This document shows positions 21,236-60,056 of a stretch of DNA of 64,000 nucleotides, piece by piece. Position numbers and translations under genes: made by a program. The stretch is from the NCBI GenBank assembly GCA_002104945.1, contig MCFH01000008.1, positions 868,001-932,000 of the forward strand, read 5' to 3'. The notes beneath the pieces are model-generated. The model saw only the letters and a program-made list of their open reading frames with translations. It was not told the DNA's origin and did no database searches. Position 1 is the first letter of the stretch. Every line of letters starts with the position of its first letter. Source of the stretch: Piromyces finnis finn (taxonomy: Eukaryota > Fungi > Neocallimastigomycota).

Positions 21236-22153
21236 ATTACTTAAATAGTATTATATAAATATTTTTATAACTATATAATTATTTACACTAAATAATAAAA
21301 TAAAAAAAAATAATATTTAGAACAAAATATATTATTATTATTAATAGAATCCTGAAATTATTATAAATTATAACATATAGCAATTATAATATTATCGGAA
21401 TTGTTTAAATATACTAATAAATTTTTTATATATTATTAAATAAAATTATTAAGGTTAACATAAAAAAAATATTTGTTATAAAATATTATTCTAAATTGTT
21501 AACTCATTAACAATTAATTTTTCAATCTATGAATTAAAGTTATTGTTCTTACATATATATTATTAAATATTAAAACTTTACAACAATAATAATAATATTA
21601 AAACTTTAGATTATAATAAATAATAACTATAATGTATTATTTAAGTTATAAAAAAATATATATATATTATTTAAATATTGTTTAATAGTTTGTGCTACAA
21701 AATAAATATTCATTTTTTATTTTTATTTTTTTTTTTTATATTAGTTAATATTATTAATAGTAGATAAATGACATTGAAATGTTTTTTTTTTTATTTATTA
21801 TATAACACTTATACAAAATATAATTAATTAAATAGTTTTTCTATAGAGCAATCATAATTATTCTTTATTAGTTTTATTATAAATCAAAACTTATAAAATA
21901 AATATAAAATGAAAAATAATATATATTAAATATTTCGCATTAGCTATTTTATAAAAGTTATTAAGTAATTATTATTACAATATTAACTATTTAATCTTTT
22001 ATATAACATAATCCACTTATTCATATTGATATAGAATTTCTTTAAATAATTTATAATTAATAAATTATAAATAAATATTATAAATTATTATTAAATACTA
22101 CAATTAATTAATAATCCAATCATAATACAATTTTAATTAAAATAAGTCTTTTC

Positions 22154-22161
22154 AACTCCGA
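22154..22161 (+). promoter_or_regulatory. Candidate flagellar-gene cis-element AACTCCGA, starting 92 nt upstream of the ZMYND10 ATG
   Basis: Exact 8-mer shared with the CCDC148-like, DNAI7 and IFT122 upstream regions. Function is inferred. Confidence 0.45.
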
Positions 22162-22245
22162 ACTAAAAAATTAAGATATAAAATATTGATATTTATGTTA
22201 AATTTTAAATAATTGAATATACTTTTATATTTATTTTAAAAGATA

Positions 22246-24620
22246 ATGATATCAGATAATCAGTAAGTAAATATAATTGTAATATATAATACTTAGTAAT
22301 TTATGATTTATATTTTATTTTATATTAATATATTTATAACATAACAAAGATTTACTAGTGTATTAACTGCGAATGAAGCCGAGGTTTACATTCAAGAGTT
22401 AAGAAAAATCTCTGTTGAAAATTATGGAAATGATAAATGGATGAAACAACATGAATATATTGAAAAGTTGAACATTCAAGTAAAAATAAATTTTCTGTTT
22501 TACTATTAAATGAATATATATAAATATTAAAATGGTGAAATATTAAAATATGAATATAAAATATTTTATAGGCACATTTGAATGTTTCTCAACAATCAGA
22601 AGAATATATTTCTGAATTATTAATTACATATGATAAGGTTATTACATTTTACAATCACATAATATCAGTTTTAAATAATTTCATGGATTTCAACTAATAA
22701 CCATTAATTATTATTAACAAAATAGCTTGAAACATTAATATATAATTTGTTAGTAAGTGAAACATGGAGAAATAAAGTTTATCCATTAATAAGAAATAAA
22801 ATATCTCAGGGTAACAGTTTACGTGTTTATATGATGGTAATATTGTGATTATATCATTATAATAATAATAATAATAATAATAATAATAATAATAATAATA
22901 TTAATATTAATATTAACCATTAAATAATTTAAAATAGCTTTATCATGAAGTTACAATTGTTAACTTGTTAGAATTAGTATTGTATAACAAAAATGCATGT
23001 ATATCGGTTGAAGAAAAGATGCTTGATATGGTTGATTATTGCTCAAGAAAAGTCACATTTTTAAATACATGGTATATATATATATATATAAGCGTAAATA
23101 TAATTTAATTTTAATTATTTTATTTGCTAAATAAAAATTATTAATGTTAAAGGGAGGATGATGATGATGAAGATGAAGAAAGTGTTAAAGATATTAATAA
23201 ATTTATGGAAAGAAGTGAAGTTGAAGTAATTAATAATATTGTTATTATTAGTAACTTTTATTAATAAATGTTATTAAAATTATACCTTTTTATAATAAAA
23301 AGCAAATGAATAAGACTATAAGAAAGCAGAATTATGCTATATCAATAAATGCTTTATCTATATTAAGATATATGACTGATTATATTAATGACTTACCATT
23401 AAGTATAATGACAAGACTATTAAATACAAAAGGTATTAACATTTATATTAAGATATTTTATTATGTGTAAAGTATAATAATAAATATTTATTATATTTAA
23501 AAAAGATATGATTACTGCATTATCATATTTAATCGAATCTGTTCCATGGGTAAGAAGAACACCAAGTAATAAAATTTTAAGATGGGAAGGATCAAACTGG
23601 AAGGAAATAAGTAAAAAAGATATTTCAAAACTTTGTCAAGTTGAGGCACAAGTATGTTCTATAATTCTATAATATATTAGATTATATTTATTTTATTTTC
23701 ATTTATAAAATAATTATTTTAATATAAACGATTTAAATTTTAGATTTGGATTGCGTTGTATAATTTGATGGTTGAGCCAGAATGTCGTAGAAAATATGCA
23801 TATACAAATCATACAAGAGAAGTTATTTTGCGAGTAAATAATAAATTATAGTAAAATGAATTATAAATTTAAAATAATACTAAACAAAATTAATTTAATA
23901 CGAAAATAATTATTAGTTAAGACCATATTTAACATCACAATTAATTGATGAATTACCAATCTTAACAGACTTAAAAAGGGTTTTAGATGAATTAAGTATT
24001 TTGAATATTCCAGATAATTCTGTACAAGCTGGGTTGCTAGTGGAACAAGTAATTAAAATATATAAGTTCTTAAACCTATAAATAATTTTATTAAGTTTTA
24101 AATAACACAATTATAGATTCCTGAAATGTTAGAAGAAATTCAAAATGGAAAAGATTGGAAGAAAATAGCAAAAATATGCAAAAAAGAAATTTTAAGTGAT
24201 TCCCAAGAAAATATGATGGCTTTAGCAAAAAAGTATTTATAAAATATAATAATATATAAAAAATCATAATATTAAATTTAAAATTTCATATAATACTTTT
24301 ATTCATAATTATTTAGATTAGCTGGAATGTATAATATTGATCAATATGATTCATTAATCGATACTCCAAAGTGTGCAAAATGTGGAAGACCAGCTGATAA
24401 AAGATGCTCCAAATGTAAAAATGAATGGTAAATTTCAATTATTTTTTAATTTATAAATTTATTCAATATTTTAATTTTTAAAATTTCATATTAATTAAAT
24501 AGGTATTGCTCAAGAGAATGCCAAGTTCATTCATGGTCTACTCATAAAAAAATATGTAATTTAGTTGCTTCATATAATGAAGTAAAACCAAATGAATCAA
24601 AAATTACTGTGCTTAATTAA
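22246..24620 (+). CDS. ZMYND10: ZMYND10/BLU axonemal dynein assembly factor
   Basis: VLTANEAEVYIQELRKISVENYGNDKWMKQHEYIEKLNIQ; LLVSETWRNKVYPLI; LYHEVTIVNLLELVLYNK; C-terminal MYND finger PKCAKCGRPADKRCSKCKNEW|YCSRECQVHSWSTHKKIC. Confidence 0.93.
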
Positions 24621-58800: not shown

Positions 58801-59668
58801 CCACCAATAACAACATAGTCTCCATTTGTAAAGTAAGAAATTGAGCATGGATCATAATCTAAAACTCTATCACGACCAACTTGCCTACCGTTTATCTGAA
58901 AAAATGATAATTTCCTTGACCAATCTGTAACTGCTAATATTTGTTGATCATTATGTGGGTTTGGATTCCATGATAATGCCCATATTGGTAATGTACTTCT
59001 TTCAATTCTTATTTTTTCCTCCCCTAATTTATTTCTTATAGATATATGACCATTATACATACCTAGTGCTATATATTGACCATCACTTGTCCATGACGAA
59101 CATAAAATTCTTGATGGAACCTATTTTAAATTATTTTTATTTTTTTGTTTATTTTTATTAAGTTTTTATTAAAAATATATAATATTTTAATTTGAATATT
59201 TTTAATATTATAAATTGGGTATATGTATATATATTACTGATATTAATAAATTTTTATTACCTTATGTTTTATAACAGATTTTTGTTCAGCAGACCAGAGT
59301 CCAAAATCTGACAAGGTACAACTAACAACTTGGCCTGAAACTGGATTAAAAGATAAATGTTGAATTGGGTCATTATGATGATATTTTAATATTCCTTCAT
59401 ATTTATTATTCCATATAATAACATCTTTATCTGCACCACCTGAAGCAAATTGCTTTCCATCTTGAGAATAATCCAAGCAATACACAGTATTTTTATGAGC
59501 TTTCAATGTTTGTATTAAGCTACCTTCATTTGATTCATAAACTAATATTTGATTTCCTACAGCTGCTAATATCTCTGATCCATCTGGAGAAAAAGCAATA
59601 TCATAAATAGGTTGTTGATTTCCTTCATGGTCATTAATAGTATCACTCCAAGATAAAAATGCCCTCAT
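55818..59668 (-). CDS. IFT122: IFT122 (WDR10), intraflagellar transport complex A core subunit; 3 exons
   Basis: WD40 start [61 protein letters not shown]; [25 protein letters not shown]; [22 protein letters not shown]; TPR region; C-terminal CPLCNHFF...CPFCR. Confidence 0.97.
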
Positions 59669-60048
59669 TAAATCAATACTTTAATTAAATATTTTATGTA
59701 TGTAATTAATTTTTTTCAATAAATCTAGATTTATGTTTTTCTCTTTTTTTATAATTTATATAAAATTTATAGACAACCTGCTTATAATTGTATAATTGAA
59801 TATTAGAGTTTTTGTATATTTATTTTATATATCTCTTAAAAATTTAAATAATAATTTTTTTTTATTTATTTAATTATTATTGTTTATGGACAAAAATATT
59901 AATAAGTTTATTGTACAAAAATGTACATTTTCTTTTTTTTTTTTTTTTTTTTTTTTTTGAAAAGTATTATAGTTTAAATAAAATAATTTCTAATATAAAG
60001 TAGTAAATTTTTCAAAGATTTTAAAAAATGGCACATAAATTATGCATA

Positions 60049-60056
60049 TCGGAGTT
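60049..60056 (-). promoter_or_regulatory. Candidate cis-element AACTCCGA, about 380 nt upstream of the IFT122 ATG
   Basis: Exact match (TCGGAGTT on the + strand) in the IFT122 upstream intergenic region. Confidence 0.4.

Follow-up and report, generated by a model that had tools for sequence, protein, structure and literature searches.

A short DNA word conserved at flagellar gene promoters of anaerobic gut fungi

An initial annotation of a 64,000-nt stretch of the anaerobic gut fungus Piromyces finnis (contig MCFH01000008.1, positions 868,001 to 932,000, forward strand; hereafter the window) had singled out a recurrent 8-mer, AACTCCGA, as a candidate regulatory element of zoospore flagellum genes. 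Our follow-up indicates that the word is a genuine promoter element, conserved and linked to the flagellar and ciliogenesis genes of these fungi: it is in excess in AT-rich DNA, it is associated with flagellar genes, it is conserved at orthologous promoters, and it is independent of orientation and exact distance to the gene. Based on these four observations, we consider it likely that AACTCCGA serves as a promoter cis-element of a flagellum/ciliogenesis gene set, with the binding site of one putative sequence-specific transcription factor as its most probable nature. Its retention at the same promoters in related genera, together with its presence before many flagellar genes, makes AACTCCGA the probable docking site of a flagellum-gene switch.

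Four exact copies of AACTCCGA were present in the window, all of them in AT-rich spacers (7–15% GC) upstream of the ZMYND10-like, DNAI7, CCDC148-like and IFT122 genes (Table 1), at the positions given by the initial annotation and with no further copy elsewhere in the window. Dinucleotide shuffles of the window yielded a mean of 0.25 copies, with none of 100 shuffles reaching four, and the genome density of the word would place 0.31 copies in 64 kb (Poisson P = 3e-4 for finding four). For the AT-rich third of the window, a first-order model predicted 0.023 copies versus the 4 observed (P ~1e-8 before correction for the post hoc choice of the word). The earlier rough estimate was ~0.3 expected copies, and fewer in AT-rich DNA. 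The copies before the ZMYND10-like and CCDC148-like genes share the 11-mer TCAACTCCGAA (at 22152 and 49112), and their 8-mers start 92 and 93 nt from the respective start codons, both as originally described. Two one-mismatch variants, AATTCCGA on the EFHC1 side and AACTCAGA upstream of the Fuzzy-like gene, were also found where they had been reported, and are the sole clearly intergenic one-mismatch copies in the window; the surroundings of a third one-mismatch copy, AACTTCGA at 43537, have 17% GC and are classed neither as intergenic nor otherwise.

Across the P. finnis genome (56.46 Mb, 232 contigs) the exact word occurs 273 times. We read the surroundings of 50 of these sites, comprising the first 20 listed (contigs C1 and C2; unselected) and 30 of the 31 AACTCCGAAT sites. 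Nine of the former and 20 of the latter (29/50 together) were located in AT-rich DNA, which extrapolates to ~135–160 AT-rich copies genome-wide versus ~21 by the first-order model, a roughly six-fold excess; the remaining copies, in coding-like DNA, were at or below expectation. Outside the window, flagellar neighbours were identified at 9 of 25 readable intergenic sites (P ~1e-4, given an assumed 8% chance rate of a ciliome neighbour). The flagellar neighbours at these nine sites are IFT43, IFT46, WDR35/IFT121, NYD-SP28 (DRC1/2-like), Tectonic, CFAP52, BBS1 (2.8 kb away), a TMEM249 homolog and the divergent pair ARL3 and AK7 (Table 1). In sperm, TMEM249 belongs to the CatSper channel as an auxiliary subunit.

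The association was then assessed in the opposite direction, from genes to sites. Twenty-eight flagellar genes were located independently by Pfam families genome-wide, and their coordinates were compared with all 273 sites; the set consisted of 12 non-cytoplasmic dynein heavy chains, three B9 genes, IFT57, IFT54, IFT81, WDR19, two RSP4/6-like genes, RSP3, CFAP20, GAS8, PACRG, RIB43A and three PIH1 genes. An exact copy within ~2 kb upstream was found for four of the 28, with ~0.3 expected (P ~1e-4): a dynein heavy chain (~810 nt before the ATG), RSP4/6 (779 nt), IFT54 (472 nt) and, as the weakest case of the four, a B9 gene (~1.5 kb). None of 13 proteasome subunit genes had AACTCCGA upstream. 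Enrichment near ciliome genes, on which the initial annotation had made its proposal depend, holds in both directions. Overall, we estimate that the exact word covers ~15–25% of flagellar genes, versus roughly 1% or less of all promoters as judged by genome density. A search of the genome for the Tektin family gave no match and is hence uninformative.

To follow the element beyond P. finnis, syntenic loci were compared in Neocallimastix californiae, N. lanati, Neocallimastix 'constans', Anaeromyces robustus, Piromyces sp. E2 and a metagenomic relative; the gut-fungus IFT122 cluster was reached via a chytrid intermediate, and the TRA1 orthologs directly. The orthologous spacers (8–16% GC) were alignable in short blocks only, MAFFT being unreliable and blastn dominated by poly-A/T, and conservation was instead measured by counting shared words against 300 Markov simulations. 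Upstream of IFT122, the 15-mer TTTAAACTCCGATAT was the longest word common to P. finnis, N. californiae and A. robustus, and the metagenomic gut fungus likewise carried the motif upstream of this gene. The Fuzzy-like promoters of P. finnis, N. californiae/lanati, A. robustus and Piromyces sp. E2 (four genomes, three genera) had AAACTCAGAAT in common. In the spacer between EFHC1 and the ZMYND10-like gene, the only G/C-bearing words of at least 9 bases common to three genera were CAATTCCGATA and AACTCCGAA, that is, the two motif copies. CAATTCCGATA, the longest of the G/C-bearing words common to these spacers, lies on the EFHC1 side, 336 nt before the gene in A. robustus (L096:5486) and 228 nt before it in Neocallimastix 'constans' (L097:6872). 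A. robustus further has exact copies 59 nt before the zf-MYND ortholog (L096:6234), 148 nt before DNAI7 in the same reverse orientation (L096:31151), and ~145 nt before the first exon of the CCDC148-like gene (L083:21988). None of the 300 simulations reached the observed word lengths in the three-genus, four-genome and DNAI7-pair comparisons, and 2 of 300 did so for the EFHC1/ZMYND10 spacer compared between two genera.

Motif words are thus conserved in two to four genera at the IFT122, Fuzzy-like, EFHC1, ZMYND10-like and DNAI7 promoters, where they are the longest, or nearly the only, G/C-bearing words common to the orthologous spacers. Conservation in other genera of Neocallimastigomycota, the second point on which the initial annotation had hung its case, extends to both one-mismatch variants, AATTCCGA and AACTCAGA, each of which is kept across genera; the changes involved are C to T at position 3 and C to A at position 6. 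The retention of a particular variant at each promoter points to selection acting on the individual sites, and shows which changes are tolerated.

These comparisons also bear on one alternative, that of a chance word picked post hoc in a window rich in flagellar genes. The word was indeed chosen post hoc, the window is an unusual flagellar cluster, and one-mismatch copies are not enriched as a class (14 matches in the window at up to one mismatch versus 10.5 expected). However, sites on other contigs adjoin flagellar genes, independently found flagellar genes carry the motif, and both the genome-wide and the cross-genus results, including the absence of any simulation matching the three-genus, four-genome and DNAI7-pair comparisons, contradict a chance origin, which we regard as extremely improbable.

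Several observations nonetheless weigh against a flagellar promoter element. The exact word is found at only ~14% of the independently located flagellar genes; a single one of the 12 non-cytoplasmic dynein heavy chains has an exact copy, and IFT57, IFT81, WDR19, CFAP20, RSP3, GAS8, PACRG and RIB43A all lack one upstream. In Neocallimastix the copy before the CCDC148-like gene has been lost. The genome-wide reading is a sample of ~50 of 273 sites and the 8% chance rate of ciliome neighbours is an assumption, and ~16 of the 25 readable intergenic sites adjoin unnamed genes, non-flagellar genes, or no open reading frame (ORF) within 1.5–3 kb.

Another reading is that of a broader programme, in which a genuine transcription factor site would serve all zoospore-stage, basal-body or cell-cycle genes, the flagellar ones being just those whose names are recognisable. 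At the majority of readable intergenic sites, the neighbouring genes have no Pfam, PDB or Atlas match (exons at L050, L053, L060 and L061 gave no identification in PDB or the ESM Atlas). An inositol 5-phosphatase and a subunit of a CatSper-type channel are also found next to copies. A CCAAT box lies within 150 nt of 7 of 16 unassigned sites; as a G/C-bearing word in very AT-rich DNA (chance rate not computed), it hints that these sites are in promoters too. At the same time, the confidently named neighbours are all ciliary except MetE, NUDIX and adenosine kinase, and span IFT-A, IFT-B, BBSome, transition zone and axoneme; the other neighbours also comprise the inositol 5-phosphatase and a leucine-rich repeat gene. 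With the proteasome genes (0/13) also free of the motif, we consider a broader programme rather unlikely and favour an element of the flagellum/ciliogenesis gene set.

As to the anatomy of the element, 32 intergenic copies were compared and proved to be flanked by AT-rich DNA of no mutual similarity, the sole preference being A or T directly after the word, which gives a core of 8–9 nt. Because these flanks are unrelated, the motif is not a dispersed repeat, an origin that the initial annotation had named as a possible undoing of its proposal. The forms seen to be tolerated are AAYTCCGA and AACTCMGA, usually followed by A or T. Copies occur in both orientations relative to the gene, at distances of ~60 to ~800 nt from the ATG, as would be expected of a factor site further upstream more than of a core-promoter element or an element in RNA.

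A repeat of >5 kb, 99.9% identical between copies, does carry the word in its AACTCCGAAC form, in DNA of ~38% GC (L024, L032 and L037; G000:C1:447811, C1:2393883 and C2:562179; many small contigs). Its copies of the word are not the promoter copies, and a large share of the 41 AACTCCGAAC sites is probably due to this repeat; at the repeat site we found no ORF of at least 100 amino acids and no match to an Rfam family. Separately, a B9-domain gene lacking an exact copy (L072, G000:C151) is preceded by TACTCCGA (L072:856) and AACTCCAA (L072:1115), 645 and 386 nt upstream, respectively, a hint that the working core is maybe the 7-mer ACTCCGA, or that weaker sites exist.

In favour of an element acting at the RNA level, in the 5' untranslated region (UTR) or elsewhere in the transcript, are the two copies only 92–93 nt before their ATGs, where RNA contigs gave no 5' ends. 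These contigs yielded introns and the 3' end of DNAI7, and the only 5' end seen was that of AXDND1, with a 5' UTR of ~45 nt. That short leader, the distances of up to 380–810 nt, and the occurrence of both orientations, the reverse one being conserved at DNAI7 itself, make an RNA element very unlikely compared with a DNA site.

Alignment of 16 flagellar-gene copies showed A or T two bases before AAC in all 16, A, T or C but never G directly before AAC, and an invariant TCCGA. This bears out the earlier statement that RFX and forkhead consensus sequences both differ from the motif. An RFX X-box (GTNRCC N0-3 RGYAAC) or half-site (GTTRCY) was ruled out on account of the missing G two bases before AAC, the lack of a palindrome and the foreign TCCGA; a forkhead core (RYAAAYA) was ruled out by the varying base before AAC (A, T or C) and by the base after it, which is always T and never A.

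The RFX family deserves separate consideration, since chytrids possess RFX genes and the ciliary genes of animals and choanoflagellates are under RFX control (PMC10530576). In the choanoflagellate S. rosetta, the X-box is found in 21.9% of conserved ciliome promoters versus 2% of all promoters (PMC10530576). The element described here is similar in being a short promoter-proximal word at a minority of ciliome genes (~15–25%), including IFT (intraflagellar transport), BBS, transition-zone and axonemal genes, and its AAC equals the end of RGYAAC. One could therefore suppose a diverged RFX half-site, that is, the known X-box system in fungal form. Against this, the half-site G two bases before AAC is absent from every one of the 16 copies, the TCCGA has no X-box counterpart, and AACTCCGA is not palindromic and has so far been seen in gut fungi. 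Furthermore, in the single published study of chytrid ciliome promoters that our literature search turned up, Coyle et al. found neither an enriched motif nor an RFX motif in those of Spizellomyces (PMC10530576). A fungal version of the X-box system consequently appears highly improbable to us.

Other known systems offer partial likenesses. As with FOXJ1 and its forkhead sites, the genes concerned include those of motile cilia, and TAAAC before some copies (IFT122, Fuzzy-like) resembles part of the forkhead core; unlike forkhead sites, the conserved part here is CTCCGA, for which there is no forkhead counterpart. Beyond animals and choanoflagellates, most ciliated eukaryotes lack foxJ1 (PMC10530576). 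Read on the reverse strand, the element is TCGGAG, with a single CGG triplet in an AT-rich context, which resembles sites of Zn2Cys6 proteins. The similarity is one of resemblance, and typical Zn2Cys6 sites differ in having a second CGG at fixed spacing: here no second triplet occurs in 10 nt on either side, and the flanks are plain AT-rich DNA. Some zinc-cluster monomers, known from yeast factors, do bind single-CGG sites, and by this analogy a Zn2Cys6 identity for the putative factor is a guess. In its general properties, the element resembles regulon motifs detected in fungal promoters by phylogenetic footprinting, such as the PAC (polymerase A and C) and RRPE (ribosomal RNA processing element) words of yeast ribosome-biogenesis genes, being 8–9 nt long, attached to a coherent gene set, shared across genera, independent of orientation and located a few hundred nt from the ATG, while differing from them in both word and gene set.

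Taken as the site of a transcription factor, AACTCCGA would place that putative protein 60–800 nt before the ATG, irrespective of orientation, from where it would co-regulate genes for IFT, for the transition zone and BBSome, for dynein assembly and for axonemal parts; protein binding, activation and action at zoosporogenesis are the steps we infer. A bolder version, which we put forward tentatively as a possibility, is that the element could be the docking site of an unrecognised master regulator of fungal flagellum biogenesis, neither RFX nor FOXJ1, with a regulon of IFT-A, IFT-B, BBSome, transition zone, dynein assembly and axoneme, and maybe older than the gut fungi. The range of the motif so far is Neocallimastigomycota only. 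The IFT122 promoters of Spizellomyces and Batrachochytrium had no copy at up to one mismatch, and a metagenome scan with an IFT122 exon gave no confirmed locus. Two uncultured chytrid-like metagenome contigs (~40% GC, with an IFT122 66% identical to that of the window) nevertheless have motif-like words before IFT122, AACTCCGA ~160 nt before the start codon in one (L077:5130) and AAACCCCGAAA ~45 nt before it in the other (L078:5329), a lead, and only that, that the element may reach beyond gut fungi.

The genes and motif copies of the window are listed in Table 1. Gene labels were checked exon by exon, every search using single exons with no spliced protein joined, and the initial assignments are supported to differing degrees: IFT122, EFHC1 and AXDND1 are solid at the exon level, DNAI7 is supported by Casc1_N, and the ZMYND10-like gene by its MYND finger and by synteny (the syntenic zf-MYND gene of A. 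robustus encodes 457 amino acids). The CCDC148 label is weak, with only a weak Pfam match (PF27813), obtained on the Piromyces sp. E2 ortholog, and the Fuzzy label stays below the family cut-off; an exon of the Fuzzy-like gene gave no PDB match and no credible ESM Atlas match, a DNAI7 exon likewise gave no identification in these two databases, and a syntenic counterpart of the Fuzzy-like gene, a gene of 334–370 amino acids is present in other genera.

Table 1 Motif copies and associated genes. Positions are those of the window unless a locus is named.
Feature	Position	Strand	Details
EFHC1 gene	18447..20954	-	DM10 domains; divergent from ZMYND10-like gene; syntenic DM10 genes in L096 and L097
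EFHC1 variant	21395..21402	-	AATTCCGA on EFHC1 strand, ~440 nt before first EFHC1 coding exon detected
ZMYND10-like motif copy	22154..22161	+	exact AACTCCGA on gene strand, 92 nt before ATG 22246
ZMYND10-like gene	22246..24617	+	C-terminal MYND finger; exons 71-97% identical to A. robustus zf-MYND gene
DNAI7 motif copy	45138..45145	-	exact AACTCCGA, reverse orientation, 122-129 nt before ATG 45267
DNAI7 (Casc1) gene	45267..48990	+	Casc1_N at E=9e-10; transcript ends ~48990
CCDC148-like motif copy	49114..49121	+	exact AACTCCGA, 93 nt before ATG 49207; between DNAI7 transcript 3' end (~48990) and ATG
CCDC148-like gene	49207..51913	+	many short GT..AG introns; expressed, spliced RNA contigs in four runs
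IFT122 gene	55821..59668	-	one exon matches P. finnis ORX56060.1 at 516/517 residues
IFT122 motif copy	60049..60056	-	exact AACTCCGA on gene strand, 381-388 nt before ATG 59668
Fuzzy-like gene	60799..62416	-	identity weakly supported: Fuz_longin_3 E=0.03, below family cut-off
Fuzzy-like variant	62819..62826	-	AACTCAGA on gene's strand, upstream of Fuzzy-like gene
TMEM249 homolog	L070:2832-3008 (G000:C212:155865-156041)		downstream of motif copy; Pfam E=1.4e-12
ARL3 and AK7 (adenylate kinase 7)	L062 (G000:C189:931374-934383)		divergent; ~700-nt spacer with single motif copy

The cluster at 18447–62826 of the window comprises EFHC1, ZMYND10-like, DNAI7, CCDC148-like, AXDND1, IFT122 and Fuzzy-like genes, with the non-flagellar TRA1 and SEC8 among them, and RSP3 is located ~13 kb before the window (G000:C211:854329-855387). 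Gene order in the cluster is kept in Anaeromyces and largely in Neocallimastix (L079, L083, L096, L097).

Some further features of the motif-bearing spacers were recorded. The interval from EFHC1 to TRA1 in Neocallimastix 'constans' (L097:6644-10001) is AT-rich throughout and has no ZMYND10 exon detectable by tblastn, and holds an exact AACTCCGA at L097:7633, ~990 nt from EFHC1; judging from this arrangement, the ZMYND10 gene has apparently been relocated or lost, with the site left in place. Before the ZMYND10-side copy, at 30–50 nt, a CCAAT box is present in three genera (AATCCAATCAT, window 22113–22123, and in L096; ACCCAATCAG in Neocallimastix, L097 near 7590). This box (cf. TTTATCCAATCA) is probably a general promoter element here; its distance from the motif varies, and it occurs just as often near unassigned sites. 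At DNAI7, a (TAAAA)n microsatellite of ~130 nt (44998–45129) abuts the motif copy, and 42 nt downstream of that copy lies a 13-mer, TTGTGTAACATTT (45187–45199), that is shared with A. robustus (L096 between 30657 and 31298) and is longer than any simulated shared word; it may be a second promoter element or a transcription start region. A second common word before IFT122, AAAATATACCA, was dropped, its positions being inconsistent.

The means by which ciliary genes are co-regulated are known for animals and choanoflagellates, namely RFX and FOXJ1, and not for fungi. Our literature search returned no description of the motif, the 8-mer appearing as a word only in an unrelated study of JAK1 inhibitors, and found no paper describing a promoter element in Neocallimastigomycota; the main text of a 2026 atlas of the fungal flagellum contains neither 'promoter' nor 'transcription factor' (PMC13358043). 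If our reading is true, AACTCCGA would give flagellum biogenesis in zoosporic fungi its first cis-regulatory handle. The factor could then be fished out by oligonucleotide pull-down with AAACTCCGAAT or by DNA affinity purification sequencing (DAP-seq), leading to how ciliogenesis is switched on in these organisms, and the unnamed genes next to motif copies would become flagellar candidates. The element would also allow a test of whether ciliary regulation in opisthokonts was rewired between fungi and animals, and may provide a stage-specific promoter part for gut fungi.

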